The position numbers and the translations under genes were made by a program. 64,000 bases of DNA from Macrostomum lignano. Taxonomy: Eukaryota. The stretch lies in assembly GCA_002269645.1 (NCBI GenBank), contig NIVC01001096.1:124001-188000 (forward strand), read 5' to 3'. The notes below the pieces were generated by a model that did not search any database, had not been told where the DNA came from, and worked only from the letters and a program-made list of their open reading frames with translations. Numbering within the stretch: position 1 is the stretch's first letter; each line of letters opens with the position of its first letter. This document shows positions 861-62,159 of the stretch, piece after piece.

Positions 861-929
861 GGAATCGGTGTTAATCTACTGGCCTAATTTTCGGAAAGGT
901 ATATATTACACGCAATCCTGCCGGCGCAG

Positions 930-2553: not shown

Positions 2554-2849
2554 CGTGTGATCTGCTCAAGTCTGCTCAAGCCACAGAATCTCTTTGAGTT
2601 CATATATAATTAATACCGAAGGCACCGTTTCAATCGAGCAAATACTAAATAAAAAAGCTTAGTTACTAGCGTGTGCCTAATTCGTGTTGAAAACAACTCA
2701 ATTTAAGTTTTCTTTTTGATTGTTGGCTACACGCAATGATTAATATTTGTTTTTGTTTACTGAACTTTTGACAAGGTGACAGGGTCGCGCCTAACAAGAG
2801 ACAGGGTCCCCCACCATGAGACAGGTGCATCCGCTTGAAGAGAGAGGGG

Positions 2850-3292
2850 CCACCAAGAGTCAGAGTCACCCACCAAGAGTCAGAGTCACCCACCAAGAGT
2901 CAGAGTCACCCACCAAGAGTCAGAGTCACCCACCAAGAGTCAGAGTCACCCACCAAGAGTCAGAGTCACCCACCAAGAGTCAGAGTCACCTACCAAGAGT
3001 CAGAGTCACCCACCAAGAGTCAGAGTCACCTACCAAGAGTCAGAGTCACCCACCAAGAGTCAGAGTCACCTACCAAGAGTCAGAGTCACCCACCAAGAGT
3101 CAGAGTCACCCAACAAGAGTCAGAGTCACCCAACAAGAGTCAGAGTCACCCACCAATAGTCAGAGTCACCCAACAAGAGTCAGAGTCACCCAACAAGAGT
3201 CAGAGTCACCCAACAAGAGTCAGAGTCACCCAACAAGAGTCAGAGTCACCCACCAAGAGTCAGAGTCACCCACCAAGAGTCAGAGTCACTCA
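2850..3292. repeat. 20-bp minisatellite CAGAGTCACCCACCAAGAGT (~22 copies)
   Basis: Period of 20 read directly. Intergenic between genes 1 and 2. Confidence 0.95.
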
Positions 3293-3612
3293 GCAAAGCT
3301 TCTACACTTTTGATCTGTCGATTTGTTTGTCTATGACCTGTTTCTTAAGACAGTTGATTGCAAAGATTGCTCATTAAGTACCAAATTGTATGTTTTGTAC
3401 GAGTATTTCAGTTGTTTTACTAAGCCCCGACACAAGCAATAGCTGGGGCATCAACGGCCATAGAGATCGTGCCGCTGTTACACCAGCCTGTTGGGCCATT
3501 TTAACTACATTGTTTTTCTACGAGCCGTCTAATTAATCGAGCACGCCAAGATTAAGCGCACGGAGCTCGGATTTTAACTGAAGCAATCAATTTGAAGCAT
3601 TCAAGCAACATC

Positions 3613-6398
3613 ATGTCGATAACTAAGGGCTACATCAACGGAAAGTTTATCATGGTTATTGATATTGAATCTAGGAAGGAGGTAAGAATGACTTCGTCCC
3701 TAAGTAAAGTCATACTGAGCTCTGAATTTGATACCGTTTTGCTTTGCTCAACTCGCAGGACGAGCAGGCGAAGGCGCAGCCTCAGCCGCTCACGGAGACC
3801 AGTGTCCGTGAAAAATACGCTTACGACATGTACTGCATGGTGGAGCACTTCAACAGCCTACTCAAAGGTAACTCATTGGCGGCTGGCTTCCTCCCGCTCA
3901 CCGAAGTCAGCGTGTTCTCTCGGATCTACGAAGGCGTTCTACTGTGCGCCTTGGCCAACCTGCTCAAGCCGAACTTTGTGGACGAGAAGAGCGTCGTGGT
4001 GAAAGAGGAGCTGCTCGACAACTCGGCCGACGGGGAGCTGCGCAAGATGGAGAACCGCAACATCGGCATCACGGCGCTCCGGACTCTGGGCGTGTACATG
4101 GACTCCGAAACGGCTGAGTGGATCAAGATGGACACCCCGTTCGAGATGACGGGTCTTCTAGTCCAGGTTCTGAGGCTGGCCACTGTCGGGCGAATGCACT
4201 TTCAGAACTTTGAGATTCTGGTTCACCTGTTCGACGGCTGGTCCGAGCCTGAGGAAGCTGGGTGAGAATGTGGCTCAGGAGTGTCTGAAAAAGTACATCC
4301 TATTGCAACTTCCGTATGATACATGCCAGAGGCATCGGTGAGCTTAAATTAGTGTCCCAACCAGATCAGAGTCTTTTTATCTGTCACAATTGGCAAATTG
4401 TTTTACCGAATCGAATCTAACTATACTACCTCAATGCGATTTTTCTAGCTTGATTCTAGCCACCGACCGTGAGACAATGCTACTAATCTGGATCAATTAT
4501 CAGCTGAAAAAAGCTGGCTCAGACATCAAACTCGCAGATCTTGGTGAAAGTTTGGCTGACTCAAAAGTGTACTCAACACTGTTGTGGACAGTGGCCCCTG
4601 AGGCTCAGCGAGCTTCGCTGACATCCGCTAAAGACATCATGAAGGAGACGGATCTGACCAAGCGAGCCGAGCTTGTCATTGCCAACGCTGAGAAACTGGG
4701 AATTTCCGGCGTGTTGAGGCCTGAGCACATTGCCACAGCTGGGAAACTGGGTATAAGCAACTCAAAAGGATTGCACAACATTGTTCTCAACATGGCTTTT
4801 TTCTATCGCATATTTGCTGCTTATCCCAATATCGATGTACCGAAGATGAAGGACAAACCAGCAGGCAAAGAAGCTGCATCGACCCCGGAGCAGCAGGTAC
4901 AGGAGTCGTGCAAATACGGCGTCTCAGAAGAGACTCTAATCCGCTGGCTGAACTCCTTCGGTCCATCGAGTCCCGTTGTGTCACTGCAAACTGACCTGCG
5001 CAACGGGCGAGTGCTGCTTGAGGTGAGTCACATTGACGAGTCTTGGATTATTACAGAGAATTTTCAGACTCTTTGCTTGGATTCGTTGGGCTTGTCACGT
5101 AATTGTTTCATCCGTTAGGCGTCTCGCCCTCTTCAGAATTCAAAAGATATGGGGACGGAATTGTACGTAGTAGGAGTTTGAATTGTCTGGGATGTACGTG
5201 TACGAGTACAATCGACATGTAATGAAAGGCGTTGCATGTCGATTCTCGTAGCACCTGTACGTCCCTACGAACTTGACGTTTTGCTACGCTGGCATCGAAA
5301 CATAAAACATGATTTTTTCCCACTGCATTCGTTAGGTTTGGGACGCGATGTTTCCCGGCAGTGTTCCGTGGAAAAAAGTGAAGCTTGAACACTTTGAAAT
5401 GTTTGCTAGGCGCAAATTTAACTGGATAGCTAACTGCGACATTGCTATTAGCATCGGCGAGAAGCACGGCATCTCGAAGAATGTCTGCTCGTCTGGTAAC
5501 ATTGCGGCGGGAGAGACCAAGTACATCGCGTCCATGGTGTTTCTCATGATGCGCCTGCACTCTCAGTTAACTAGACAGCGGGCCATCGGCGGATCTAAAA
5601 AAGTTGCCGAACTCGACAACCAAAGTCTGGTGAAGTGGTTCAACGAGAGCATGGAGAAGTACGGGAGCGCATTTCGTCTAAAAACTTTAGAGGTAAGTTG
5701 TCCAACCAACGCGGACCAGGCAAATAAAAATATTGGTTTTATCGATGTGCTTTCATTCACGAATGTCAACTTCAGTCTAGGAAACAGCTTCCCAGAACAT
5801 AATAGGATGTGGATTTGCAAAACAATTACCTATCAACAGGTACATCTACATCTCGTGGCTAAAAAAATAAAATAGTTCCTGGAATTTCAATTGGAATTGC
5901 ATAAATAAATTACAAAATTAAACTTGTGCACACTAAGGCTAATTTGTAACTCACTCGCAATTACCCTTAATCCCCCAGGATCCGTCGCTAAAGAGCACAA
6001 ACGCTCTGGGCTACTTTGGCGAGCGAGTCCTAGTTGAGAACAATCTGTGCTCAAGCGGTCCCGCCGACTTTCCAAGAAAACCGAAAGCCACAGCTAAGAG
6101 CGCCAACGCGATCGATATCAGCTTGGCCGACGCTGACGAAGAGACTGCTGCTCAAGATGAAGCACAGCAGCAGCAATCCGACGCTAACAACTCGGGTGAG
6201 GGCGCATGGCTGTTCAACAGCGTCGAGCAGGTGTCGTCGGATCCGGCGCTGCTCACAAAGTTTTCGGTGACGGCCATCCTCATGTTCAACAAGGCCGGCG
6301 TGATTGTCTATGCCAGCAAGCTGGGACCGGAGACGGACTTGTCGGTCTATCGGAGCGTCCTGATGGAGCTGAACGCTTTGTCGCTCAAGACCAACTGA
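3613..6398 (+). CDS. Plastin/fimbrin-like actin-bundling protein gene 2 (4 CH domains, no EF-hand), 5 exons, 640 aa
   Basis: Exons 3613-3681, 3759-4261, 4449-5022, 5336-5692, 5979-6398. All introns GT-AG, phases 0/2/0/0, total 1923 nt. Plastin-like motifs: GVLLCALANLLKPNFVDEK (CH1), LLIWINYQL..LADSKVY (CH2), EETLIRWLNS..NCDIAISIG (CH3), AILMFNKAGVIVYA (CH4 end). In-frame TAA upstream at 3553, AATAAA at 6529. Confidence 0.88.
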
Positions 6399-7171
6399 CG
6401 TGTGATCTGCTCAAGTCTGCTCAAGCCAGAGAGTCTCTTTGAGTTCATAAAAGCTATCTATTGAGAAAAATTTAAGCTTTATAAAATTGTAAAATGGCAA
6501 AAACTGTCAACAAGCAACATTTCAATTGAATAAAGTTCAACTTAAGTTTTAACAACTAAAAATATCTTCCGCTTCAATTTTAACTGGCTCTTTAGTTAAA
6601 AGGATGCTTGATCCCACCAATATGATGTTGAATCTATTTGCTCAACATAGGTGAACGTGTGGTGACTGCTGTCCGTTCGGAACTCCGGCCTCTGTCACCC
6701 AAGTTTACGGAAATGAGCCATGCAGGGGCTAAAATACACCGGGGATTGTAATGCGCTGACACTACGTACAGATTGCCTATAGTGGCGTTGGGATGAGCAG
6801 AATGAAAAACCTGATCTGGATCCAAAGGTAAAAGACAAGAGAAGACGGAAACATGGTCTGACCAAGCAGCGCCATTATGACGCCTAGAAAACGTTGGGAT
6901 TAAAGATAAATACAAATCGACAAAAAATTCGACAAAAAGTATAATGATCTTTTCAAAAGAATAGTAGGAATTAGCTCTTGACTTACTGAGTTAAAATTTC
7001 TCGCAGTTTTGCGTACTGAAGTAAGTTCATCGTTGTTTATGGTAAAACTTGCTACATCTTGCTTGTGCGTTTTAAAAGGCACTTTTGCAAAGCAAAACCA
7101 TTTTTTTAACAAGCGTAGTTCCACACGCAAACAACTTCACATAATACACTCGGACATCTCAATAAGGCAAA

Positions 7172-10100
7172 ATGGCGACACATGTAAACTTCATCAATGG
7201 AACAACATTTACGCATATTGAAAAAACCATAATAAGAAGCGAGTTTACGGTAAGGAATTGAAAAGGTTTACTTAACGTATATTTATTACGCCTGCATCGT
7301 TTGGGCCAGATGTGCAACCGACAGCTCAGCCGCAGCTATTGCGCGGTGCATGTGAAGGCTGCGTACGGCTGTTCAGTCCAAGGACTGGGGCTGGGGGGTC
7401 GCCACACACCTCAATTACCCCAGCTAATGCTGGCACCCGTTTTACAGCTGTGTGAACTGAAGCAATGCAAAGTTAAGTGTCTTACTTAAGGACACAAATT
7501 GTTCCGAGTGGGATCGGGAATCGAACCCCCGACCTTTCAGTCATGAGTCCGAGGCTCTGACCACTAGGCTAAAACCTCCATGTTTACTGGAGCAAGTGTT
7601 GAATACGAGCTAATATGCAGCAAAGCCATATTTTCAATAACCGAGAAACTAGCACGCGTTAAAGACAATCTAATTTACCCTTTACCTACTGCTTTTTGGC
7701 CCTAATTTCCAGATTTTCATCAATAGTGAAAGTGAGCAGTCCAAGCCCATACCGATCTCGGAAACGATTGTTCGCAAACAATTCGGATTTGACATGGTCT
7801 GCATGGTTGAGCATTTTAACAGAGTGCTGAAGGACATCACTCTGGCAACCAGCTGTGTACCTCTAACTGAGGTGAGCATCTTCTACAAAGCCTACGAAGG
7901 CATCCTGCTCTGCGCTTTGGCCAATCTGCTCAAGCCGGATTCGGTAGACGAAAAAACCATCACCTTGAAACCGGAGCTGCTGGACGATTCGCCAGACGGA
8001 GAGTTGAGAAAAATTGAGAATCGCAATATCGGCATCACAGCCCTGCGCTCTCAGGGTGTCTGCATCAGCAGGCAGTCTGCCGCGATGGTTAATATTCACG
8101 TGCCGTCTACCATTGCGGCTATTCTCGTTCAGGTGCTCCGGCGAGTCACTCTGGGCCGGATGCACTTTCAAAGCTTTGAGGTGTTGGTTCACCTTTTCGA
8201 CGGCTGGTCAAGCGCAGAGGAGGCCAGGTGAGATTGGTAATAAATGTGGCTTCTTCAAGTTTATGTTGATAAAATAGTTCCAATTTTTTTATTTTTCTGA
8301 AACTTGCGTTGGAGACTTATGGGGCACCCAAAATTATAAAAATGCAAAAAAAGTGTAGAAAATTACCTGTACGGTTGATGCAATCACAATTTACTCGATT
8401 CCCTATTCTCTTAATGAGGTTCGGTGAGAAAAAGTTTCTACGAATACATTTTTGAAAGTGTATCCACTAGACTTTTTATCTAATAGCACATGTGCTAGAA
8501 CTTCATTAGGCCAATTAAAGATGAATATTAATATCTACAAATTAATATGCAATTGTCTTTTACGTTCGCTGATAATAGTTTTTCAATTTAGTTATAATGC
8601 ATAGACAGTGCCACGTCACTGTTCGCTTTTTTTAAAAAACTGCCACGTCACGACCGGCTCGATCTTTGCACTACCACTTTCACTGCACCCAGCCAAAGCA
8701 ACGTTCGCAACTTTAAAGCATTTCGCACCTCAAAACCAATTACTGTACAAGGCTAGATTACTAATTCTATTGTATTAAGGCAGTAACAGCACTTGATTTT
8801 GGTAAGCAAATTCATTTAGATAAAGTTATAGAATTCAACCAACTTCTAACATAATTATGTTGACTCTTTGGTGGATTCTCTCTTTTCTCGTGTCGTGGAG
8901 TTACAACCCCTCCCCCCCCCCTATTAGAATTGGAATTTATCAGCACAATCTTGAATAGGTCTCCATGTCTCTATTCAAGTTTATGTTGATAAAATCAATC
9001 CCCATGAAGAATCTCCCCACCCTAAAACCCCCCATTCCCCATGCCCCGGTGGTTGGCTTTAAGCTACATATAATTGGGTTAAAGCTACCTAAAAATGGAG
9101 CTCAAATTTGAAATCAGCACCATCAAAAACCCCTAGAGAGACAAAATTATGATCCTATAAAAATTGAAACTATTTTATCAACATAAACTTGAAGAAGTCC
9201 AATAAATGTTCTACTTGTTTGTATCAGTAGTGCAACTGCATGGCTCTATCGTCAGATAACAAATCTCCCGATGATGCAATCACAATGGTTGTAAAACTCG
9301 CAATCATTCAAACGATGTGCTTTGAATGGAAGCAATCACAACTAGACATTGCCTTACAAAAGACTATCTTCACTTGCTGCATTTTAAACGAATGTATACG
9401 TAGGTTGGTTGGTTTAAAACCGAGAGTGACTGCGTGCAGTGCTTGTATGTGCTCAGGAGCCAGCGGCATGGGCAGAATTGCCTCTACGCTGGTTCTGTAC
9501 TGTAGGTCGACTCTGCTGCAAATAGTTATTATATAAAACCTATAACTCTCAAGCTGCTTCGTTAATTTCTTTATTAAAAAAATCATTCGACACGAATATA
9601 GTTCTCGTTGCCTTCTCTCCCTTTGCTTCAATCTGTGTTGCGTCAGTGCGATTCTGGCTACCGATCGAGAGAAGATGCTGCTGATCTGGATCAATCACCT
9701 GTTGAAAAAGGCCAGCACGGATCTGCAGCTGACTAATCTTGGAGCAAACTTGGCCGACTCAAAAGTGTACTCAATTCTACTCTGGACAGTGGCGCCCGAG
9801 GCTCAGAGAGCTTCGCTAACATCTTCCGAAGACGTCATGAAGGAGACGGATTTGACGAAGCGAGCCGAGCTAGTTGTTGCCAACGCTGAAAAATTGGGCA
9901 TTACCGGGATTTTGAGGCCCGAGCACATTGTGAAAGTTGGCAAAGATTCCGCAATTACCTTTGTAGGCCTGAAGAATATTGTGCTCAATTTGGCATTTCT
10001 GTTTCGCATATTTGTCGCTTACCCGAACATCGATGTGCCCAAGATGAAGGACTTGCCGTCTGCTGCTTCTAAAAAGGCCGCCGCAGTGGCGCCGATGCAG

Positions 10101-12813
10101 CAGGTCAGCAGTCTGGGCAAACACGGCGCCACTGAGGACTCTCTGATCCGCTGGCTGAACTCGTTCGGCCCTTCAAGTCCTGTCGTGTCGCTCAAAACTG
10201 ACCTGTGCAATGGACGAGTGCTGCTTGAGGTTCGTTTCTGTCTGCCTGTGTTTGGTCCTGTAGAGCAAATCCACTCTTTGTTTTTTCTAGGGATCCTTAT
10301 ACCGATCTATACATTCGATAATGGGGAGCCGTAGCCCAGCGGTCCAGCGCGGCTCTCTGCTGTACCAGCGGCCCATAACTCGATTCCAAGTACAGTCAGT
10401 CACATTAACTTCGGGCTAATTTGAAATCTCGGCTTGGCTCTGCTCGTGCAATTCACGCCCTTGAGGGCCAACCCCCCCCCCCCAAGGCACAGTGAAGTGT
10501 ACATGCCGCTTTACACTCCTATGTGTGTGTGTGCCTGTGCGTATGACTGCGTACGTATCCTTGCGCTTGTGTGTGCCTGCTCAGGGGAGTCGGCGGAATG
10601 GGCAGTAATGCCTCTCGCCGGTTGTGTGACAGACTCAAGGCTTGTTGACTACGCCATCAAACGATCGGTAAAAACTTCAGTCAGTACGAGCGTAGTTGTG
10701 ATTTTTATTACTCAATTGATGACGAGTTTGTATATTCTTAATATTAAAAAGTAGGATTACAGAGCTTTAAGTTTAAATACGATACTTGAAGTCGATGTAT
10801 TCGACTAATGGAAGTCACCCAAGGCGAAGGGAGTGACATGCCTGACAGTTAAAAATTCAAGGTCATTGTGCACCCTGTGTGAGCAAGTGTACGAGCGTAT
10901 AAATGTGTGCTTGCGTACAGCATCAGTGCGTGTTTGCAAGCATGACTGCGGGTCGACTGTGGCCTTTGATTTGCGGAAATGGCTACACTGAATGAAGGTC
11001 GGGGGTTCTATTCGGCTGATCCCACTGGATCAATTTGTATCCTTGAGCAAGACACTTCACTCTGCATTGCTTCAGTTCACTCAGCTGTAAAATGGGTGCC
11101 AGCATTAGCTGGGGTAATTGAGGGTGTGTGTGGCGACCCCCCAGTCCTTGGACTGAACAGCCGTACGCAGCCTTCAGATGCGCCACGCAATAGCTGCGGC
11201 TGAGCTGCCGGTTGCGAATCTGGCCATTAGGGCAGGTATAATAAATCATTATGATTATTGACTTCTCTTCGCACCATCGCGCAGGTGTGGGACGCCATGT
11301 TTCCCGGCTGCGTTCCCTGGAACAAGGTCAAGCTTGAAGAGGTAAACCTGAGCTCTAGGCGAAAATTCACCTGGATGGCCAACTGCGACATTGCTATTGG
11401 CATCGGGCAGAAACATGGCATCACCAGGGACGTCTGCTCTTCTGGCAACATCTCTACCGGTGAGGTAAAGTACATCGCTTCAATGGTGTTCCTCATGATG
11501 CGCCTGCACGCCCAGCTGACTCGCAAGGAGATCATCGGCGAAGACAGCAAAGTTGCCGATTTAGACGATAAAGGGCTGGTTAAATGGTTCAACGAAATGA
11601 TGGAGAAATATCGCAGCGACTTCCGACTGAAGAGTGTTGATGTAAGTTTGAGTAAAAGTAGGGCTTTTGGTTCTGGATTCCCCAAATGTCACATTCCCCA
11701 AATGTCACATTCCCCAAGTGTCACATTCCCCAAATGTCACATTCCCCAAATGTCACATTCCACAAATGTCACACTCCCCAAATGTCACACTCCCCAAATG
11801 TCACACTCCCCAAATGTCACACTCCCTAAATGCCCCATTCCCCAAATGTCACACTCCCCAAATGTGACATTCGCCAAATGCCCCATTCCCCAAATGTCAC
11901 ACTCCCCAAATGTCACACTCCCCAAATGTCACACTCCCCAAATGTCACACTCTCCAAATTTCACACTCCCCAAATGTCACACTCCCTAAATGCCCCATTC
12001 CCCAAATGTCACACTCCCCAAATGTGACATTCGCCAAATGCCCTATTCCCCAAATGTCACACTCCCCAAATGTCACACTCCCCAAATGTCACACTCTCCA
12101 AATGTCACACTCTCCAAATGTCACACTCCCCAAATGTCACACTCCCCAAATGTCACACTCCCCAAATGTCACACTTCCCAAATATGTCACACTCCCCAAA
12201 TGCCCCATTTCCCAAATGTAAAAAATCGAACCCCGGCGCACTCTTCATTGCCCTGCAAACTCAGGATCCCAATCTTAAAAACACCAACGCGCTGGGCTAC
12301 TTCGGCGAACGAATCCTGGTTGAGAACAACCTGTTGTCAAGCGGTCCGGCCGATTTTCCAAGAAAACCAAAGGTCGCAGAGGCAGCGAAGAAGCCGGCAG
12401 CAGCCGCAGGCGCCGCAGGCAAGCGAACGCCGCCGCCAGTTGCGCCGAAACCGAAGATGCCGGCAAAGATGCCGCCAAAGAGTAAAAATGCAGCCGACAG
12501 CAACGCGGAAGAGGACGACGGAGCTAATAATGAGGAGCCGGCGGCTACGAATGACGACAACGGAGAGGAGGAGGAGCAGCAGACGCCAGCTGAAGCGCAC
12601 AACTCCGGCGGTGGCGCTTGGCAATTCAACAGCGTCGAACAGGTGTCGTCGGACCCGGCGCTTCTGACGACATTCTCCGTAACTGCCATCCTGATGTTCA
12701 GCAAGGCAGGGGTCATTGTCTACGCTAGCAAGCTGGGACCGGAGACAGATGCAGCCGTGTACAGAAGTGTCTTGATGGAGTTGAACGGTTTGTCAATGAA
12801 AACCTGCAATTGA
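7172..12813 (+). CDS. Plastin/fimbrin-like gene 3 (4 CH domains, no EF-hand), 5 exons, 693 aa
   Basis: Exons 7172-7249, 7713-8227, 9647-10229, 11285-11641, 12265-12813. Same intron phases as gene 2, total 2082 nt. Exon 1 MATHVNFINGTTF.. resembles gene 2 exon 1 MSITKGYINGKF. AATAAA at 12932. Confidence 0.87.
7280..7579 (-). mobile_element. tRNA-derived SINE family A with a CORE-like central domain
   Basis: On the minus strand: A box TAGCCTAGTGG, B box GGTTCGATTCC, then GTGTCCTTAAGTAAGACACTTAAC..CTTCAGTTCACACAGCTGTAAAACGGG. Related copies at 10980-11245 (+) and 42781-42890 (-). Confidence 0.85.
10323..10625 (+). mobile_element. Probable tRNA-derived SINE family B
   Basis: A-box-like TAGCCCAGCGG and B-box-like ACTCGATTCC. 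Body shared with 1455-1670. Confidence 0.65.
10980..11245 (+). mobile_element. SINE family A copy (degenerate head)
   Basis: Matches the reverse complement of 7280-7560 over more than 200 bp. Confidence 0.85.
11680..12225. repeat. 16-bp minisatellite CCCCAAATGTCACACT filling intron 4 of gene 3
   Basis: Period of 16. The intron spans 11642-12264. Confidence 0.95.
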
Positions 12814-13080
12814 CACCGCAAGCCTGCTGTGGGATCATTTATGTTTCAAAATCATCCATTGTGTAGAAGTAACATTGGTACATAACTGCATAATGACGCG
12901 TCTTGCTAAGCAACAAGCTGGCATGTCAGGTAATAAATTTTTGTTTTTCTAGTCTGATGCCGGATCATTTTTGACAACAATGGCCAATGCAGGATGCAGG
13001 CAAAAATACACGGAAACCTACTATATAATAATTTAGAAAAATATGAAGCCAAGTTCATCATTTCATACGATTTGAATGCC

Positions 13081-13108
13081 TGACTGACTGACTGACTGAC
13101 TGACTGAC
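13081..13108. repeat. (TGAC)7 microsatellite at the left junction of the retrotransposon
   Basis: Read directly. A longer interrupted copy lies at 18284-18330. Confidence 0.9.
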
Positions 13109-13114
13109 TTGAGC

Positions 13115-13287
13115 TGTAGTAACTGAGTCAGAGGCCGTGTTTGCTGTGTAGCCAAACTCTTACAAATCTCGCCGCGCTGGGCACGCGTCTATATATTATG
13201 GAGTTAGAATTGGGGTGGCGGTACCCACCCCACTCCGCAGCCAATCAGACTGCCCGGGCGTACCATACTGTGCGTACGCACACTACA
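13115..13287 (-). repeat. 3' LTR (173 bp)
   Basis: Direct repeat of 17550-17722, preceded on the minus strand by the PPT. Confidence 0.97.
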
Positions 13288-13512
13288 TCTCTCCCCTTTC
13301 GAATAGAGACTGAGAGAGAAGAAAATCGATTTAAACGTAACTCGAAAATACAAAGTTCGAAAGATTCACCGATGATGCGCATTGAAAATGGAGATTAAAA
13401 TATTGAGGAAATAAAATATTTGAATTGAATGCAGCAAAAACGTAAAAAAACTTCAGTCCGCATATTACGGAAAAGAAAGCCAGTTAATTTCGGTCATTGC
13501 AGGATTTCAAAT

Positions 13513-16500
13513 TCAGTCCTTGTAGATTTTCACGCCCGCCCGAGCAGCGCGGGGGTGCGGGCGCAGCGCCACGGGGGAGGCGGGTGGATCTCGGGCCGCC
13601 TCGCCCGAAGCTCTCGGTGCAGCGGTCTGCGTCTGGGCGCCGGCGTCGGCCAAGTCGGGGCTGACGACTTTGACCGCCGTGCAGTGCCGCCAGCAGGTCG
13701 TGCCGTCCCGGCGTAGCAGCAGCGAGTTGCCGGCCACCCGCTGGACTGTCCAGGCACCGCTCTCGAATGGCGTCTGCGTCTTGCTGGCACCGACCCACCG
13801 TCGTAGCACCGAGTCGCCGACCTGGACGTCGTGCCGCCGTGGTCGCCTTTTTGCGTCCGCGTGCTGCTTCATCGCCGCCTTGGCGCCAGCGTCGGCTTCT
13901 CTCAGCCGCTGCTCGTTGATGCGGACTCGCTGGGACGGCCGGGCGGCGGGGATGATGTCGTTTGGCCGCCGGCCCATCAGCAGCTCGGCTGGTGCGCGCC
14001 CGGTGGCCGTGTGCGGCGTGTTCCTGTAGGCCAGCAGCCACTCGTCCAGAGCGGCCCTCCAGTCCCGCCGCTCCTCGATGGCTGCTCGCACGACTTTGTT
14101 GATGGAGCGGTTCAGTCGCTCTGTCATGCCGTTGGCCGCTGGGTAGTAGGGCGTGATGAGGCGGTGCTTGATCCCGTAGCTCGCCAGGAACCGGCCGAAC
14201 TCCTTGGACGAGAAAGGTGGTCCATTATCTGTCACGAGCTCCTGTGGGATCCCGAAGCGGGCGAACATCTCTCGCAGGCGGGGAATCAATGCCTCGGCCG
14301 TCGTCGTCTGCATGAGCTGCACCTCCGGAAACCTTGAGTAGCGGTCCACGCACACCAGCAGCATGTTGTTGTTGATGGGTCCCACGAAATCGGCGCCGAT
14401 CGACAGCCAGGCGCCCGCGGGGATCGGCGTCGGCTGCAGAGGCGTGGCCCGGACGGCTGGCGTGTGCGACGTGACGGCGCAGCTGCGGCATCGACTGACG
14501 AATTCCTCCGCTTGAGTTGCCATCCTCGGCCACCATACCTTCGTGCAGAGTCTGGCGATCGTCTTCTGCGAGCACTGGTGCCCTTGATGCGCTAATTCGA
14601 GCATCTGCTGCCGCAGATCAGCTGGCACGACGATTCGGTGGTGTCGAAGGAGGACCCCGTCAACCGCAGACAGCTCCTCTCGCAGCGCGTGGAGCGAGCG
14701 CATCTCGGGGTTGGAGCGATCCCACCGACCGCCTTGCGTCGCCGCTATCGCCGCCCGGATGACTGTGTCGCTGGCAGAGCTCTTGCGGATGTCTTGGAGT
14801 GTCAGCGCCATCGGCACAGCCGCCTGCGCTACCTCGTTGATGTAGGCCTCCCTCCGCTGCTCGCCAAAACTTCCGTCGTGCTCGCTTAGGGGCTGCCTGC
14901 TGAGTACATCTGCAGCATTGGAGGCTCCCGGCTGATACTCGACCTTGAACACTAGGTGCTGGATCCTCAGCGCCATTCGCTCGACTCGTGGAGGCGGGCG
15001 CGACCCAGGCGCGAACATGGCCGTCAGCGGCTTGTGATCAGAGACCACTGTGAACTGGGGCGATCCATGCAGGTAGTACTCAAACTTCAGGCAGCCGAAC
15101 TTCACGGCGAGTGCCTCTTTCTCGGTCTGCGAATATCGCCGCTCGACATCGGAGAGGGTCCGGCTGGCGTATGCGACCGGCCTCGAGCTGCCGTCGCGCT
15201 GCACCTGCGCCAGGATGGCGCCCAGTCCGGTCGGCCCCGCGTCCACAATCAGCTGCGTGTGTAGCCGCTTGTCGTAAAAAGCCAGCGTTGTCGGCTCCGC
15301 GATGCTGCGCTTCAGCTGCTCAAAGGCGCTGGCCTGGTCGGCGCCCCACTGCCAGTCGACGGTCTTCCTGGTCAGGCGCCGCAGCGGCTCCGCCACCTTG
15401 GCCAGCTGTGGCGTGAACACGGCGAGGTAGTTCACGAGGCCTAGGAATGAGCGAAGCTGCCCAATCGACTCGGGCTCCTTGAAGTCTTGAACGGCGGCGA
15501 CCTTGCTCTCCGTGGCCTGGACCCCTTCCGCCGTGAGCCGCATTCCCATGAACTCGATGCTGCTGCGCGCCAGTCGGCATTTCCGAGCGTTCAGCGTGAT
15601 GCCATGCTGCGCCAGGCGGGCCAGACATGCCTCGAGGCTGCTGTTGTGCTCCGCCATCGTGCGGCCGAACACGACCACGTCGTCGTGGATCCATTTGACG
15701 TTGGGCAGGCCAGCCAGCACTCGACTCATCACATTCTGCAGGATCTCCTGGGAGGTGGACAGGCCCATGCACAGCCGGGTGAGACGGCGAAGCCCGCGAG
15801 GCGTCGAGAATGTTAGCAGGTTGCGGCATTTCTCGGCGACAGGCACCTGGTAGAACGCCTTCGCGATGTCCAGCTCTGAGAACACAGTGCTGCCAGCCAT
15901 GTCCCCGGTCACCTCCTCGAAAGTCGGAATCTGGTGTCGCTCGCGGATGACAAAGCGGTTGACATCGCGGAGGTCCTGCGTGATGCGCACCTCGCCCGGC
16001 TCCTTCTTGGGCACGACGACCATCCGCGCGACCCACGGCGCCGGGCCGTCGACGGGCTCAATGATCCCGAGCTGCTCTAACAACTGCAGTTCCTTGTCCA
16101 CCGCGTCTGCCAGGTGGATCGGCACCTTCGAAGGCGCATGGCAGACCGGGCGGGCGCTGTCGGTGAGGTGGATGTCGGCAGGCGGCCCGGTGAAGCAGCC
16201 GATTCCGCTGAACACGCTGGCGTGCTTGCGCAGCACCCTGCCGATGTCCTCGACGTGTCCTTGAGGCACTCCGCTGGATCTCGTGCCGCTGAGAAGGCCA
16301 TCGACCGCCGCCTCCGCTTCAGCGACCTGCAGCACCTGCTGTCCGGCTGTCGGTGGTGGCCCGACCCGCAGGATGTCCATCTGAGTGGCCGTCTGCCTGC
16401 CGATGATGGTGATGCCTCTCCCTTCGACGACGTGGAACGTGGCGACTGCCTGCCGGCCGAAAATGCGGACGTCCATCGCCGCCTTGCCCAGCAGCTGCAT

Positions 16501-17517
16501 CGGCCTGTCCGACCCGTACGCGAACAGCCTGTCCGAGGTGGTCTGCAGGTGCGGCCGCTGTCTCAGACTCTCGAACGTGGCCCGGTTGATCACATTTCGA
16601 GCCGCACCGCTGTCGATCAACACCGACAGTCTGGAGCCGTTGATCTCGGCTATTGTGTGGGCCGACTGCTCACCCTGATCGACCTCGAACACGCCGGAGT
16701 CCGGGTGGTCCACCTTCTGGTAGCTGGTCTCGCCTTGCAGCGTTGCGACGGCGTCGGCGCCGCTCTGCGGGGCGCCCTGCTTGGACCTGCAGGCTCGCGC
16801 GAAGTGGCCCGGCTTCCCGCACTTTCTGCAGCTCTTGCCCTGCGCTGCGGTGCACGTGGGGTGCCCTGGCCTGCCGCAGCGATCGCACGATACGTGCTGC
16901 GTTGGTGTCTGCGGCATCTGTGGCTTCTGGTCTCTTCTGACTGCTGCGAGCTGCTGCGGTTCCCCTGGTCTGTCGCTCTCCATCGCGGTGGCCTGCTGCT
17001 CCGCGGCTTCTTTCGCCCTCGCCTTTTTGAGCACATCTGCCAGGGAGATATTGTTGGTCTGCAAGAAGTCTCTCCTGAGTCTCTCAGATTCGCAGTAGGC
17101 GACGATTTTGTCACGGATCAGCGAGTCTCTGAGGGTCCCGAACTCACACTGCTCCGCCGCCTTGCGCAGACGCTGATACCACTGGTCGATCTGCTCGCCA
17201 GGCTGCTGTCTGCAGGTCTCAAACTTGAAACGCAGGAACACAATGTTATTCTTCCCGTCCCAGAACGCCTGGATGTTTTTCGCGAGGCTGCTGTAGTCCT
17301 CTCCAGAGGCGATCTCGTTCTCTTCGACTACAGCCTGCAGCTCCTCTCCTGCGGCGTACAGCAGCAGCTGCTGCCCTCGAGTCTTGTCGGTGATTCCAGC
17401 TGCATTGATGTACGTGGCGAAGCGACGAGTCCATGCAGTCCAGCGCTGTGCTGTGGAGTGGCAGTCGCTATCGATTGTAAACGGCCCGGGTGGCGCGAGT
17501 GAAATTTGCTGAGTCAT
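13513..17517 (-). CDS. gag-pol: Gag-Pol polyprotein, 1334 aa, uninterrupted
   Basis: Zn knuckles CDRCGRPGHPTC and CRKCGKPGHFARAC; protease LIDSGA; RT FSELDIAKAFYQ..WIHDDVVV; RNase H DAGPTGLGAIL..EKEALA..SDHKPL; integrase HHCC plus D(GADFVGP)-D(TDNGPPF)-E(GMTER). Confidence 0.97.
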   Translation of the reverse strand: MTQQISLAPPGPFTIDSDCHSTAQRWTAWTRRFATYINAAGITDKTRGQQLLLYAAGEELQAVVEENEIASGEDYSSLAKNIQAFWDGKNNIVFLRFKFETCRQQPGEQIDQWYQRLRKAAEQCEFGTLRDSLIRDKIVAYCESERLRRDFLQTNNISLADVLKKARAKEAAEQQATAMESDRPGEPQQLAAVRRDQKPQMPQTPTQHVSCDRCGRPGHPTCTAAQGKSCRKCGKPGHFARACRSKQGAPQSGADAVATLQGETSYQKVDHPDSGVFEVDQGEQSAHTIAEINGSRLSVLIDSGAARNVINRATFESLRQRPHLQTTSDRLFAYGSDRPMQLLGKAAMDVRIFGRQAVATFHVVEGRGITIIGRQTATQMDILRVGPPPTAGQQVLQVAEAEAAVDGLLSGTRSSGVPQGHVEDIGRVLRKHASVFSGIGCFTGPPADIHLTDSARPVCHAPSKVPIHLADAVDKELQLLEQLGIIEPVDGPAPWVARMVVVPKKEPGEVRITQDLRDVNRFVIRERHQIPTFEEVTGDMAGSTVFSELDIAKAFYQVPVAEKCRNLLTFSTPRGLRRLTRLCMGLSTSQEILQNVMSRVLAGLPNVKWIHDDVVVFGRTMAEHNSSLEACLARLAQHGITLNARKCRLARSSIEFMGMRLTAEGVQATESKVAAVQDFKEPESIGQLRSFLGLVNYLAVFTPQLAKVAEPLRRLTRKTVDWQWGADQASAFEQLKRSIAEPTTLAFYDKRLHTQLIVDAGPTGLGAILAQVQRDGSSRPVAYASRTLSDVERRYSQTEKEALAVKFGCLKFEYYLHGSPQFTVVSDHKPLTAMFAPGSRPPPRVERMALRIQHLVFKVEYQPGASNAADVLSRQPLSEHDGSFGEQRREAYINEVAQAAVPMALTLQDIRKSSASDTVIRAAIAATQGGRWDRSNPEMRSLHALREELSAVDGVLLRHHRIVVPADLRQQMLELAHQGHQCSQKTIARLCTKVWWPRMATQAEEFVSRCRSCAVTSHTPAVRATPLQPTPIPAGAWLSIGADFVGPINNNMLLVCVDRYSRFPEVQLMQTTTAEALIPRLREMFARFGIPQELVTDNGPPFSSKEFGRFLASYGIKHRLITPYYPAANGMTERLNRSINKVVRAAIEERRDWRAALDEWLLAYRNTPHTATGRAPAELLMGRRPNDIIPAARPSQRVRINEQRLREADAGAKAAMKQHADAKRRPRRHDVQVGDSVLRRWVGASKTQTPFESGAWTVQRVAGNSLLLRRDGTTCWRHCTAVKVVSPDLADAGAQTQTAAPRASGEAARDPPASPVALRPHPRAARAGVKIYKD

Positions 17518-17549
17518 GATTTTTAAAGGTTCAGTTCTTGCGACGCCAT

Positions 17550-17722
17550 TGTAGTAACTGAGTCAGAGGCCGTGTTTGCTGTGTAGCCAAACTCTTACAA
17601 ATCTCGCCGCGCTGGGCACGCGTCTATATATTATGGAGTTAGAATTGGGGTGGCGGTACCCACCCCACTCCGCAGCCAATCAGACTGCCCGGGCGTACCA
17701 TACTGTGCGTACGCACACTACA
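17550..17722 (-). repeat. 5' LTR (173 bp) with promoter-like motifs
   Basis: Followed by a 1-nt spacer and the PBS. On the minus strand it has ATTGG (CCAAT box) about 50 nt upstream of TATATA, and TGACTCA (AP-1-like) near its 3' end. Confidence 0.95.
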
Positions 17723-18306
17723 GGAGCTAATAATGAGGAGCCGGCGGCTACGAATGACGACAACGGAGAGGAGGAGGAGCAGCAGACGCCAGCTGAAGCG
17801 CACAACTCCGGCGGTGGCGCTTGGCAATTCAACAGCGTCGAACAGGTGTCGTCGGACCCGGCGCTTCTGACGACATTCTCCGTAACTGCCATCCTGATGT
17901 TCAGCAAGGCAGGGGTCATTGTCTACGCTAGCAAGCTGGGACCGGAGACAGATGCAGCCGTGTACAGAAGTGTCTTGATGGAGTTGAACGGTTTGTCAAT
18001 GAAAACCTGCAATTGACACCGCAAGCCTGCTGTGGGATCATTTATGTTTCAAAATCATCCATTGTGTAGAAGTAACATTGGTACATAACTGCATAATGAC
18101 GCGTCTTGCTAAGCAACAAGCTGGCATGTCAGGTAATAAATTTTTGTTTTTCTAGTCTGATGCCGGATCATTTTTGACAACAATGGCCAATGCAGGATGC
18201 AGGCAAAAATACACGGAAACCTACTATATAATAATTTAGAATTGTATGAAGCCAAGTTCATCATTTCATACGATTTGAATGCCTGACTGACTGACTGACT
18301 GACTGA
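17723..18306 (+). pseudogene. Duplicated 3' part of plastin-like gene 3 (end of exon 5, stop, 3'UTR, polyA signal)
   Basis: Copy of 12520-13103 at a constant offset of 5203. The only non-microsatellite difference seen is AAA (13039-13041) versus TTG (18242-18244). Confidence 0.92.
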
Positions 18307-19384
18307 ATGACTGACTGACTGACTGACTGAATTACATGTAAAAGCGGCTAAAGGAGAGGATGAAATAACGAATTATGTCGACATTTGCAGTCAGGTTGCA
18401 GGCAGGAATTCTAATTGGAGGGTGGGGCACAGTTAAACCTAAGGGACAACAATATTTTAATGGGTGCCCCTGTTCTCCTATAGCTTAGGTGGGCGCCCCC
18501 TCCCTGTTGCTTCTACAGTATCTCTTTGGTTGGGCACCTATATCTCATGCTTTGGGCACCCCTACCCCTTTCTCAGTAACTACTCCGAACTGAAGCAAAT
18601 CAAGGGACTGAGAACTGGGACTATACACTGTAGAGAGCTATAAAATAAAAAACCATGGATATTTAAGGTCATAATTCGTGTAAAAAATATCTGTGGCGAA
18701 AAATAAAATATAATCAATGAATGACTGTCTTTTACTCAAGGCAGTGAGGACGCTCAGAATTTGGACGCCCATGTTGAGCATTTGATTTCTGACGAATATT
18801 TAATCAGTATATTTTTAGCTTTCAGAATGAAACTTCAAGAGGGGAAACCTCCATTTCAATTTGAATGATCTGACTTACCTTTTTCGTTGCACGGGTTTTC
18901 GTTATCGACCGTTAAATGGACACGACTGATTTTAGTTGCAATTCAAAAAGCCTTTTTTACGAGAATGTAAAAGAATGAGAAGAACTTGAGAACATTGAAT
19001 GTTCGGAAGTAAATAAAGACTGTGTGCAAGGGTTGAACTCCTAAAAAAGAATCGTTTAAACTGAAACAGTACTGAAGACTACTGAGTCAGTGTATTTGCG
19101 TTGTTCTCTTTTTGAATAAGGTGGTAACTATAAATGTTTGTGAGAAAACTATAATAACTATTTAAAACATATTGCACGATAACTAGACTGTAAACTAAAC
19201 TGACTGTTTCATATGCAGATCGAAATGCCGAAAGTACAGATCACTAAATACTGAATTCGAGCAGAATCACTTATCGACTTTCGCTATCTGTCTTATTTTA
19301 TTGCAACTTAGTGAATTTAAGTCTAGTTGCAAATTACTGTCTGTGATCTAACCTGTAAACAGATTTGCGGCTAATTATTAAAAA

Positions 19385-24299
<4,915 letters not shown>

Positions 24300-24399
24300 G
24301 CCTCCGATGACCTTCATTTGTTACCCGCCTAATGCTTCACTGCCTCTAACCGCTCTACTTCTCTAATCTCTCCCCTATCCCTCACTGTTCTCTCCTAAC

Positions 24400-25240
24400 C
24401 CAACTCTACTTCTACCCTCACTCTACTTCTACACCCACTCGACTTCGACTTCTCTCCCCTACCCTCACTCTGCTTCTCTCCCCTACCCTCACTCTGCTTC
24501 TCTCCCCTACCCTCACTCTGCTTCTCTCCCCTACCCTCACTCTACGTCTCTCCCCTACCCTCACTCTACTTCTCTCCCCTACCCTCACTCTACTTCTCTC
24601 CCCTACCCTCACTCTGCTTCTCTCCCCTACCCTCACTCTACTTCTCTCCCCTACCCTCACTCTACTTTTCCCCTACCCTCACTCTACTTCTCTCCCCTAC
24701 CCTCACTCTACTTCTCTCCCCTACCCTCACTCTACTTCTCTCCCCTACCCTCACTCTACTTCTCTCCCCTACCCTCACTCTGCTTCTCTCCCCTACCCTC
24801 ACTCTACTTCTCTCCCCTATTCTCACTCTACTTCTTTCCCCTACCCTCACTCTACTTCTCTCCCCTACCCTCACTCTACTTCTCTCCCCTACCCTCACTC
24901 TACTTCTCTCCCTTACCCTCACTCTACTTCTCTCCCCTACCCTCACTCTACTTCTCTCCCCTACCCTCACTCTACTTCTCTCCCCTACCCTCACTCTACT
25001 TCTCTCCCCTACCCTCACTCTACTTCTCTCCCCTACCCTCACTCTACTTCTCTCCCCTACCCTCACTCTACTTCTCTCCCCTACCCTCACTCTACTTCTC
25101 TCCCCTACCCTCACTCTACTTCTCTCCCCTACCCTCACTTTACTTTTCTCTTCTACCCTCACTCTGCTTCTCTCCCCTACCCTCACTCTGCTTCTCTCCC
25201 CTACCCTCACTCTGCTTCTCTCCCCTACCCTCATTTCTAC
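24400..25240. repeat. 24-bp pyrimidine-rich minisatellite CTCTACTTCTCTCCCCTACCCTCA
   Basis: Period of 24, matching the 8-aa RVRVGERS periodicity on the minus strand. Lies between the convergent SLC37 and TFB1M genes. Confidence 0.95.
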
Positions 25241-48000: not shown

Positions 48001-48393
48001 ACCCCACTGTACGAATTATGACGATAAAAATTAGGGTGCACTGCTCATTACGACGGTTTGAAAACACACCGTCATGAGTCTGTCGGTAATAAAACTCTAG
48101 CTTTATTGTCGCGAAGGAGCAATAGAAAAATGGCTGCAGAGTTACTAGCTACTTGACGCCAAATAAAAAATACGGTCTCGCAGTTTGGCGTCGTTAGCAT
48201 TTATACGCTCGTTTCTTCAACTTTTTTTCGAAATGCTTTGGTTTTTTAGAGTCAGTATAGAAGTCTATTTGTACTTATCTATCGTCCTACAGCATTTGTC
48301 ACAGTGCCTCCATAGCAATTAGCACTCGACACAGCATCTGAAGCAGACAGACAAGAGTAAGAGAATCTAACACAGATGGGATTAAAGTAGCTG

Positions 48394-48757
<364 letters not shown>

Positions 48758-49613
48758 GGACGGACTCACAGACAATAGCTGACATTTTCTCCGCCCATAT
48801 CTGGATATCAAAGCTGGTTAAAATCATACGCGGACAGAATTTCAAGTCATGCAAAGGCTTATATTTAATTCACTCAAGTTAGACAAATGTCAGTTTTGTG
48901 CATTCAATGAACTATAATTACGCAGTATCATGTCAAACGGACACAGTCGTATTGCAGCTAAATACACATTATATGATTTAGTATTTCACATGGCTAAATT
49001 TCATTAAATTCGTGTAGCATGATTTTTTTAAAGCAAATTTTCGATTGAACCATCCTACAAGAGTCCTTTTTGATGTGAGCATCTGAGCGCTATATATGCG
49101 TATACGTGACTAAAGCTGTTTATGCCGATAGCTACCACAATAGGCAGAGATGGACAGAAAATGCATTGAGAAAGAGAGAGAGAGGCAGTTTACACAATAG
49201 GAGGGGGCCACGGCCTGCTCGCGGCTTGGCAACTCCTCCCTCAAAATCTTTTCTTCTTTTTTGGCCTGGCTTTTTTCCGCAGTTTTGTGCCGTTTCTTTG
49301 CCCTGACCTGCCCCCCCCCAACTCGCCTCCTCTGTCCTGTCTTCTTCTCGGCAAAGACTGCGCCCAATATATGAAACTCAATTTTGGCCAATTCAATTCA
49401 AATTTAATTTTTCATTGCCTCCACTGCATCTCTTTGCCGAGGGCCAACCACCCACACCGTGGCTGGCGCTTCAACTACGAGTAGGATAACATTCAAGTGG
49501 TCAGAGACCTCTCTCAGATATATAAAAGTTTTTTTAGCAAGGCGAGCATCTGCCAGAGTGAAAGAATTTGGTGCTGCTTCTGCTGTTGCAAAAACAATTG
49601 GCTCAGCTAAGTC

Positions 49614-62159
<12,546 letters not shown>

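Follow-up and report, generated by a model that had tools for sequence, protein, structure and literature searches.

An LTR retrotransposon flanked by a 590-bp duplication of its target region at an intact gene of Macrostomum lignano: a structure consistent with repair of a failed integration junction

Results

The host gene and the target site

The sequence studied is a stretch of 64,000 bp of the Macrostomum lignano assembly Mlig_3_7 (contig NIVC01001096.1:124001-188000); it is called the window here, and its own positions are used throughout. The host gene, gene 3, is a member of a tandem array of three CH-domain paralogs, which are 75-80% identical to one another. The gene was delimited by tblastn with P0046/P0050, by Pfam CH domains and by the NCBI gene call. 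All five of its exons are intact, the protein contains three CH domains (Pfam), and the NCBI annotation lists it as a 693-aa protein, PAA72374.1. The gene is backed up in the assembly by two homeologs and by the two tandem paralogs.

7172..12813, plus strand: gene 3, BOX15_Mlig006537g2 (Mlig006537.g2)
7172-7252, 7707-8225, 9645-10232, 11270-~11650 and 12259-12813, plus strand: the five exons of gene 3
12520..12524, plus strand: target pentamer GGAGC, uninterrupted in the intact exon 5 (codons GGA GCT)

Exon 5 starts at 12259, and position 12520 lies 87 codons further in, with the codons GGA-GCT in frame. The original prediction had equated the GGAGC that follows the right LTR of a downstream retrotransposon with these two codons, and this reading was borne out by the frame.

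An intact Ty3/gypsy-type element

The retrotransposon occupies positions 13115-17722 (4,608 bp) on the minus strand, antisense to gene 3. It is an intact LTR element of the Ty3/gypsy type with the following parts.

13115..13287, minus strand: left LTR, which is the 3' LTR in the element's own orientation, 173 bp
13288..13300, minus strand: polypurine tract GAAAGGGGAGAGA (element strand), adjoining the 3' LTR, read from sequence
13513..17517, minus strand: gag-pol, one uninterrupted ORF of 1334 aa with CCHC knuckle, DSG protease motif, RT, RNase H, and integrase zinc domain and core
17534..17548, minus strand: primer-binding site TGGCGTCGCAAGAAC, separated by 1 nt from the 5' LTR, read from sequence
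17550..17722, minus strand: right LTR, which is the 5' LTR in the element's own orientation, 173 bp

The two LTRs are 100% identical (0 differences) and have the termini TGTAG...CTACA. Pfam matches in gag-pol were zf-CCHC (residues 229-244), RVT_1 (502-661), RT_RNaseH (724-854), Integrase_H2C2 (964-1016) and rve (1052-1126); the protease gave no Pfam call, and a LIDSGA motif was seen in the ORF. The order of the pol domains, RT, RNase H and integrase last, is that of Ty3/gypsy (Metaviridae-type) elements, to which the direct LTRs with TG...CA termini, the primer-binding site by the 5' LTR and the polypurine tract by the 3' LTR also conform. A tRNA gene matching the PBS primer was not found in the window, where there is no tRNA gene. 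The perfect target-site duplication (TSD) of 4-6 bp that such elements have is lacking, as TGAGC on the left matches GGAGC on the right in four of five bases. This imperfect TSD is an anomaly to be explained and no argument against the Ty3/gypsy identity of the element.

Judged by its sequence, the element is complete, young and recently active, since it has identical LTRs, a single 1334-aa ORF with RT, RNase H and integrase domains, a primer-binding site and a polypurine tract. Further copies of the family exist, with proteins 99.5-99.7% identical and different flanks. An exact look-up of the gag-pol ORF gave no match on any other contig, and neither a second copy nor a solo LTR was found in the window or in two other copies of the locus described below (L001 and L004). 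A related M. lignano element (locus L002) has the same LTR termini and a perfect 5-bp TSD (GTAGC); its polypurine tract, GAGGAGAGA, is similar.

Two copies of a 590-bp block flank the element

On either side of the element lies a copy of a 590-bp block (12520-13109 on the left, 17723-18312 on the right); the two copies are identical at 586 of 590 positions (99.3%). The block comprises the 3' part of exon 5, the 3' UTR and a (TGAC)n microsatellite.

12520..13109, plus strand: block A, the presumed newly synthesised copy, continuous with the rest of exon 5 and carrying both derived differences
13080..13109, plus strand: microsatellite (CTGA/TGAC)7.5, end of the copied tract (TRF and alignment)
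13110..13114, plus strand: left junction TGAGC, consisting of T (1 nt, filler or G>T) and GAGC, adjoining the left LTR
17723..17727, plus strand: right target-site copy GGAGC, with a precise joint to the LTR terminal CA
17723..18312, plus strand: block A', the native 3' end of exon 5 with its UTR, severed from the gene (alignment with block A)

Block A contains the 3' 294 nt of the exon 5 coding sequence, the stop codon, the 3' UTR with an AATAAA at about 12925, and (TGAC)7. It had been predicted that an intact exon end, UTR and (TGAC)7-TT lie upstream of the left LTR; all of these are present, but the homology extends to 18312 and not to 18306. Downstream, A' runs into the native interrupted microsatellite (18283-18330) and then into the native sequence that follows gene 3. 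The four mismatches between the copies are AAA versus TTG (13039-13041 / 18242-18244) and C versus A (13104 / 18307). In the NCBI annotation A' is the 100-aa fragment gene P0049. In exact look-ups, P0049 was found in NIVC01001096.1 only and the ORF crossing the left junction on no other contig.

The two ends of the element are joined to the host differently. At the right end, ...CTACA/GGAGC at 17722/17723 is a normal integrase-made junction. The left end, which rests on the assembly consensus, is non-homologous: (TGAC)7-T is followed by T and by GAGC-LTR; one base of the TSD is missing or altered, and 1-2 T residues are present. The left copy thus ends in C(TGAC)7 T and then T-GAGC-LTR, while the repeat of the right copy reads (TGAC)5 TGAA (TGAC)5 TGAATTACATG before unique sequence begins. 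The first T of the 'TT' may be read as the next templated repeat base, in which case the filler is perhaps 1 nt; alternatively, 'TT' may represent the two native bases past the microsatellite (TGAA-TT-ACATG), the repeat having contracted. The two blocks are co-linear: the target pentamer supplies the first base of A (12520), and A' begins directly after the LTR (17723).

The GAGC expected before the left LTR, four of the five TSD bases, was found within TGAGC at 13110-13114. The chance of at least four matches in five at this place is about 1.6%, and that of GAGC exactly about 0.4%. Another local source of GAGC, or a template for the left-junction filler, was not found nearby, where 6-7-mers matched at chance level only. 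Because the related L002 element has a perfect 5-bp TSD, the GAGC by the left LTR is best read as a TSD remnant. The left LTR end, although the aberrant one, is complete and carries four of the five TSD bases, which fits either a break after two-ended strand transfer or copying of 4 nt of target by a host polymerase.

Empty loci and the direction of change

In the same assembly, two other subgenome copies of the locus (L001 and L004) have no element, a single block and an uninterrupted GGAGC. The claim that the element inserted into exon 5 at GGAGC was supported by these two empty loci, together with the 5-bp TSD of the L002 element. In both loci the three CH genes are followed directly by an MFS gene, and there is no fourth CH copy. 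A search for homologs with the last-exon protein as query gave no matches; a concatenated-exon query found them.

In the alignment, A and A' have three window-specific variants in common that are absent from L001 and L004. These shared variants show A and A' to be sister copies that arose within the lineage of the window. The variants also rule out the homeologs as template. A', L001 and L004 all carry TTG and the interrupting TGAA, which are thus ancestral, whereas AAA and the uninterrupted repeat are private to A. By this comparison, the left copy is the derived one, and its two differences fit error-prone, slippage-prone repair synthesis. The original prediction had taken the AAA/TTG difference as a sign that a homolog was the template; this reading was not upheld, as TTG is ancestral and AAA private to the left copy, and an error of repair synthesis fits AAA as well as an allelic variant does. 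The three subgenome blocks form a mosaic with a switch point upstream of 12225. A haplotype switch (inter-homolog exchange) at the element was rejected, the switch being located away from the junction.

A model for the origin of the structure

The best explanation, in which we have moderate confidence, is integration at GGAGC, failure of the left junction, resynthesis of about 590 bp and end joining at the microsatellite. As to what broke the junction, which molecule served as template, which way synthesis ran and how the ends were joined, we infer the following. A Ty3/gypsy-type element would have integrated antisense at GGAGC in the last exon of Mlig006537.g2, its right end being joined normally by integrase. 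The left junction would either have broken within the 5 nt that are single-stranded in the intermediate or never have been completed; the chromosome would then have ended in '...exon-G', and the free end of the element would have been 'GAGC-LTR'. The sequence rightward of the target, about 590 nt that comprise the remaining exon and the 3' UTR and reach into (TGAC)n, may then have been copied by templated synthesis. The template would have come from the same lineage; candidates are the sister chromatid, if still empty, a homolog of nearly identical sequence, and the downstream block. The copied strand would have had no annealing partner, because the second end starts with LTR sequence that is missing from the template. 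Synthesis presumably slipped and halted in the microsatellite, and end joining would have sealed the ends with one T added or changed. Both the gene and the element would have come out intact, with an orphan exon fragment left over; the net effect would be a target duplication of 590 bp.

Several properties of the locus are those of a repair-mediated duplication: the ancestral site is empty and has a single tract, the duplicate starts exactly at the break and the junction is non-homologous. One normal integrase junction with a 590-bp direct host duplication at the other end is also what one-ended integration leaves. The view that the left block is a templated secondary copy, ending in the microsatellite and end-joined to GAGC-LTR, is supported. 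Some points count against this explanation. A 3-nt substitution (AAA) is unusual for polymerase error, and published aberrant ends usually have no TSD remnant and are often truncated, neither of which is the case here. Such events are also rare with wild-type integrase.

Alternative explanations

The same final structure could have arisen in two steps, if an ordinary exon-disrupting insertion persisted and generations later a break at its left junction was repaired off an empty homolog, the restored gene then being selected. This course of events is possible, though we consider it unlikely. A new insertion is heterozygous at first, so an empty homolog would have been at hand, AAA/TTG could be allelic, and duplications of this type are known to form when synthesis-dependent strand annealing (SDSA) fails and the ends are joined instead. 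Yet a spontaneous break would be required inside one particular 5-bp site, and AAA occurs only in the left copy, with TTG elsewhere, and hence is no pointer to a homolog. Templates like L001 and L004, the sole other copies available in the genome, are excluded by the three shared variants, and selection would be weak given two homeologs and two tandem paralogs. Of the rescue that had been proposed, the part that stands is that the gene was left intact, but a separate, later selected step is unnecessary, because two homeologs and two tandem paralogs exist and because a break exactly within the 5-bp site is far likelier to be part of integration. Most likely, the event coincided with integration or came right after it, and was no independent rescue at a later time; for this timing we argue from prior probabilities.

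The original prediction had itself named two alternatives, a mis-join of haplotypes and a deleted fourth tandem gene copy. Under the former, an empty and a filled haplotype, or chimeric reads, were joined wrongly, and the left junction and the intact exon never occur together on one real molecule. Mlig_3_7 is indeed redundant and error-prone and contains three subgenomes, with 63.95% error-free bases (REAPR), the copied tract ends in a microsatellite, a frequent assembly breakpoint, and AAA/TTG is what would be expected of two haplotypes. Nevertheless, we find such an artefact very unlikely: the junction has zero Ns and no overlap able to cause a mis-join, and a contig start 4 nt before the LTR would be a coincidence. 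Moreover, Mlig_3_7 is a Canu long-read assembly at 130x, and the multi-kb minisatellite arrays in the window need long reads. The gene model P0051 of ML2, which was made with another assembler, shows the same order A'-element-A-exon as Canu/Mlig_3_7, although the two assemblies were built from the same PacBio reads and are not fully independent. The fourth-copy alternative, in which the right block is the remnant of a further gene whose 5' part was deleted up to the LTR, draws on the fact that the gene stands in a tandem array of three paralogs. We consider it refuted, or at most extremely improbable, since the block is 99.3% identical to gene 3, against 75-80% between paralogs, and shares its window-specific variants. 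Both L001 and L004 have three CH genes and then the MFS gene, the native downstream sequence of gene 3 follows A', and the deletion endpoint would need to fall 1 nt inside the TSD.

Two further models put the duplication before or into the integration step. If a 590-bp tandem duplication came first and the element inserted at its junction with a 5-bp TSD, a G at 13110 would originally have made the TSD perfect, one base having mutated since, and such sizes with microsatellite junctions are common among tandem duplications. The TSD would, however, have to match the first 5 bp of the second copy, about 1 in 590 given an insertion within the block, and a substitution would be needed in a 5-bp site even though the LTRs show 0 differences in 173 bp; the duplication is also absent from both other subgenome copies. 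This order of events appears highly improbable. We hold the same of a true long target-site duplication, in which the ends of the element attacked 590 bp apart (by a wide stagger or two half-site events) and the gap was filled; its pure form with a wide stagger was rejected. One-ended, non-concerted retroviral integrations with long duplications are documented, but the 5-6 nt by the left LTR (T-TGAGC) are not native at that place in A', L001 or L004. These bases match the TSD at four of five positions (p about 0.016), while the pure model predicts native sequence up to the LTR. Capture of mRNA or cDNA by template switching of reverse transcriptase was rejected: the host tract at the 3' LTR is antisense to the gene, the TSD remnant intervenes, and the tract extends beyond the poly(A) signal into the microsatellite.

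Discussion

We read the locus as a DNA-repair accident of a familiar type that happened in nature; it involves no new mechanism and leaves general principles unchanged. Its value is that of a base-resolved germline case in which the empty ancestral state is kept twice in one genome, such outcomes having come so far mostly from cell-culture retrovirus experiments and repair mutants. It illustrates that an exon insertion can be neutral from the outset, and it accounts for the spurious gene of 100 aa that the public annotation lists. It also leads to a prediction, namely that recombination between the 590-bp direct repeats could excise the element precisely. A genome screen would be possible for LTR elements that lack a perfect TSD and are flanked by direct host repeats of at least 50 bp, and would gauge the rate of misintegration in vivo.

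Integration by this element family, or by LTR retrotransposons at large given the repair background of M. lignano, might repeatedly give rise to long target duplications, although we think this improbable. If it were true, elements would regularly enter exons without gene loss and seed orphan exon fragments, the long direct repeats around them would permit scarless loss, and standard TE annotation would overlook such insertions, which seemingly have no TSD.

Comparison with known systems

LTR retrotransposon families of M. lignano have been described (PMC12801592). The element of the window resembles the canonical Ty3/gypsy (Ty3/Mdg4) element at L002 in its termini (TGTAG...CACTACA), the start of the primer-binding site (TGGCGTCGC in both), a purine-rich polypurine tract, the order gag-PR-RT-RH-IN and a 5-bp target stagger. 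It differs in that L002 has the perfect TSD GTAGC, whereas here four of five TSD bases are found together with a 590-bp flanking duplication.

In aberrant retroviral integrations one end is normal and the host DNA at the other is duplicated, for hundreds to thousands of bp; they were seen with ASLV vectors that have one defective end and with HIV-1 in the presence of suboptimal integrase inhibitors or with integrase mutants (PMC5041404). With wild-type integrase, no such aberrant events occurred among about 180 proviruses, so they are rare. The likeness to our locus lies in the precise joining of one end by integrase and the repair of the other by the host, with a direct duplication that measures hundreds of bp and not 5 bp, and with nearby host sequence copied by host polymerases during repair. 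Here, however, an endogenous element is fixed in an animal germline, as opposed to a vector in cultured cells, and its LTR end is untruncated with four of five TSD bases, which suggests that both strand transfers took place and that the intermediate broke afterwards.

Tandem duplications of 0.1-10 kb result from SDSA if the extended ends do not anneal and end joining takes over (PMC8654963). Examples are those of helq-1 and brc-1 mutants of C. elegans and the duplications linked to BRCA1 (PMC8654963, PMC12309385). As in those cases, a break end would have been extended on an intact template beyond the break, with the copied tract (0.1-10 kb) duplicated and a junction of little or no homology with occasional inserted bases. 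In contrast to the mutants, annealing would have failed for a structural reason, the 4.6 kb element being absent from the template, and not by a genetic defect, and the repeats are separated here by the element.

Proximal repair-mediated duplications of up to 619 bp were reported in 2009 (PMC2671141). Like our block, these are short (619 bp at most there, 590 bp here) and lie about 5 kb or less from the donor; their breakpoints carry filler, small deletions or microhomology, and an empty ancestral site is available for comparison. They sit inside old TEs, whereas in M. lignano the break coincides with a fresh integrase junction.

Comparison loci and host gene

The window comes from the Mlig_3_7 assembly (GCA_002269645.1; contig NIVC01001096.1, 124001-188000) of Macrostomum lignano (a free-living flatworm), which was made with Canu from 130x PacBio coverage of the inbred DV1 line and polished with Illumina reads. 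DV1 carries three diverged subgenomes, S (diploid), L1 and L2, which differ by about 1.4-2.4% SNPs and many indels (PMC10733133). Using the gene's protein, we retrieved a locus (L003) identical to the window across 22,813 bases and two further Mlig_3_7 contigs, L001 (NIVC01001909.1, carrying g3) and L004 (NIVC01000732.1, carrying g4). The latter two share the gene order of CH (calponin-homology) genes, MFS transporter and rRNA dimethylase.

The window holds three old tandem CH paralogs, whose DNA identity is only 75-80%:

~930-2553, CH gene
3613-6398, CH gene
7172-12813, CH gene (gene 3)

Gene 3 is annotated as BOX15_Mlig006537g2 (693 aa, three CH domains) and has five exons and an undisrupted frame. 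Position 12520 in exon 5 is codon-aligned, GGA GCT being codons. From here the left copy of the duplicated block (A) supplies the final 97 codons, the stop codon, the AATAAA signal and about 150 bp past the signal, so that gene 3 of the window is complete.

Gene 3 also contains, in intron 2, a 953-bp non-autonomous TIR element (8248-9200) with TIRs of about 42 nt (95%) and a 9-bp TSD, AATAAATGT, at 8239-8247 and 9201-9209. It is absent from the L001 and L004 blocks and is thus a second lineage-specific insertion of a transposable element within the gene. Introns of gene 3 and other places in the window (10995-11246; 7281-7536, inverted; 42796-42856) also hold a dispersed repeat, about 250 bp long and 86% identical, which looks like a SINE or MITE.

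The retrotransposon

The element between the two copies of the block (13115-17722; G+C 64% vs 39-52% in the flanks) and a relative have the following parts:

13115-13287 and 17550-17722, LTRs, direct repeats of 173 bp each, 100% identical, termini TGTAG...CTACA
13513-17517, minus strand, gag-pol, single uninterrupted ORF of 1334 aa
1 nt away from the 5' LTR, primer-binding site TGGCGTCGCAAGAAC
adjoining the 3' LTR, purine tract
L002 2238-6883, related intact M. lignano element, 57% protein identity, 196-bp LTRs, 99-100% identical

A CCHC knuckle, RT, RNase H, integrase zinc domain and integrase core were found in the ORF, in Ty3/gypsy order. Two other family members, from the ML2 assembly (P0001, P0002), show 99.5-99.7% protein identity and sit between different flanks, so the family was recently active. 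The L002 element has the LTR termini of the window element (TGTAG...CACTACA) and the same start of the primer-binding site, TGGCGTCGC, there immediately after the LTR. Its TSD, GTAGC, is a perfect 5 bp; a 5-bp stagger is therefore expected in this lineage.

Target site and duplicated block

The features listed in the original prediction (LTRs, GGAGC and GAGC flanks, block, AAA/TTG difference and (TGAC)7-TT) were all present. GGAGC stands right after the right LTR and TGAGC just before the left one. In a four-way alignment, L001 and L004 read ...GACGAC-GGAGC-TAA... unbroken, each with one block, after which an interrupted (TGAC)n ends in TGAATTACATG; searches of both loci for the element, for a solo LTR and for a fourth CH gene found none. 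The native target was thus GGAGC in exon 5, as had been proposed, the insertion is specific to the window lineage, and the ancestral state is one block. A deleted fourth tandem copy, the competing source named for the extra fragment, finds no counterpart at either locus.

Next to the left LTR, GAGC agrees with the expected TSD at four of five bases (chance about 0.4-1.6%). It is native at that position in no copy of the alignment, and a search for another local template found none. It is therefore best read, as predicted, as the remnant of the left TSD.

Blocks A (12520-13109) and A' (17723-18312) match at 586 of 590 positions; the mismatches are AAA vs TTG at 13039-13041 and one C vs A within the microsatellite. 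Three variants common to both (window 12528, 12841 and 12936) are absent from L001 and L004, so A and A' are sister copies of this lineage and L001-like and L004-like homeologs are excluded as template. Block A ends in (TGAC)7-T-T-GAGC-LTR, whereas A' goes on with (TGAC)5 TGAA (TGAC)5 TGAATTACATG and then unique DNA. AAA is private to A, TTG being the state of A', L001 and L004; likewise these three carry the TGAA interruption at repeat unit 5 or 6, which A's seven units lack. Both differences are thus derived in A and the native downstream sequence continues from A', which marks A as the secondary copy, in agreement with the prediction. From the two differences by themselves the polarity argument is weak, since chance alone would put both on A in 1 of 4 cases. 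The AAA/TTG difference had been taken as a sign of a homolog as template, a reading that a change derived in A does not bear out. Slippage-prone, error-prone repair synthesis would produce such private changes; an allelic origin is the alternative. We also noticed that TTG>AAA makes a 7-mer, AAAAATA (13037-13043), also present 35 bp upstream (13002-13008); a short templated (misalignment) mutation could explain this, as could chance in an A-rich stretch.

Over 900-27050 the three subgenome blocks form a mosaic, suggestive of exchange or gene conversion among subgenome copies. The window differs from L001 at 3 positions in 5.3 kb over 900-7200 and is close to it past A' (18335-20300); at 9205-11650 and 23850-24800 it diverges most among the three. 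The haplotype switch lies upstream of 12225, close to the 16-bp minisatellite rather than at the element; at the junction, therefore, the three-block comparison gave no sign that divergent chromosomes had exchanged.

Origin of the left junction

An assembly artefact at the left junction is very improbable. The junction has no sequence overlap able to mislead an overlap assembler, and resolving the window's multi-kb minisatellite arrays is possible only with long reads. Moreover, the older ML2 assembly, made by a different assembler from PacBio reads shared with Mlig_3_7, has the same order, A'-element-A-exon. There a giant antisense gene model (P0051) is co-linear with the window's minus strand, so the two assemblers concur:

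1, minus strand, rRNA dimethylase gene
2, 17893-17681, minus strand, A' and adjoining LTR edge
3, 17544-13534, minus strand, gag-pol
4, 12719-12315, minus strand, A and upstream exon, 12520 crossed unbroken

This model (UniProt A0A1I8I569, 3512 aa, named 12S rRNA dimethylase) is an annotation artefact, an antisense fusion that takes in the dimethylase gene, gag-pol and the CH genes' antisense strands. So is the 100-aa GenBank/NCBI gene at 17714-18013 (P0049), three LTR codons followed by the orphan exon fragment. Minisatellite density in the window is very high (periods 9-28 bp, arrays up to several kb):

1-860, 1677-1922, 2850-3289, 11679-12219 (16-bp period, intron 4 of gene 3, several reading frames open), 21026-23650
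27057-28300, 33092-36760, 48310-48850, 50809-52000, 54465-54964

Some arrays are common to distant sites in inverted orientation, e.g. 36031-36530 and 54465-54964.

The left junction probably arose, whatever the timing, by templated synthesis followed by end joining. The structure calls for integrase-type joining at GGAGC, for a discontinuity at the left junction inside the 5-bp site, and for templated synthesis of about 590 nt, beginning exactly at the target and ending in or just past the microsatellite, with a non-homologous join to close the gap. If the integration intermediate broke in its single-stranded 5-nt gap, the ends would be the very two that are seen, exon-G and GAGC-LTR. Annealing would be blocked structurally, since the second end starts with 4.6 kb of element absent from the template. 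The template could be a still-empty sister chromatid, given integration after replication, a near-identical homolog, or A' itself with microhomology priming. We give an event coupled to integration about an even chance. Later rescue, after a spontaneous break, is rather unlikely, about half as probable as the coupled event, because that break would have to fall in the same 5-bp site.

The structure is real and well resolved, and the outline originally drawn is right, but its framing as a rescue exceeds the data. The gene is indeed intact; it has two tandem paralogs as well as two homeologous copies, and losing a single copy would probably be tolerated, so that an intact gene 3 need not mean selection for rescue. 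The element is now bracketed by 590-bp direct repeats; were these to recombine or undergo single-strand annealing, it would be lost together with one block, leaving the exact ancestral sequence. Since the element runs antisense to gene 3, its left LTR faces that gene's 3' end, and antisense read-out is possible.

Comparison with known repair outcomes

The window structure is a further natural case of a known class of repair outcome. A structure of this kind is the known product of extended break ends that fail to anneal with the second end and undergo end joining; in C. elegans, tandem duplications of 0.1-10 kb arise in this way (PMC8654963). Vertebrate genomes commonly contain proximal repair-mediated duplications, which reach 619 bp (PMC2671141). 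In aberrant retroviral integrations, integrase inserts one end whereas host enzymes join the other, and host DNA at the aberrant end becomes duplicated for hundreds or thousands of bp (PMC5041404); the window structure carries this same signature.
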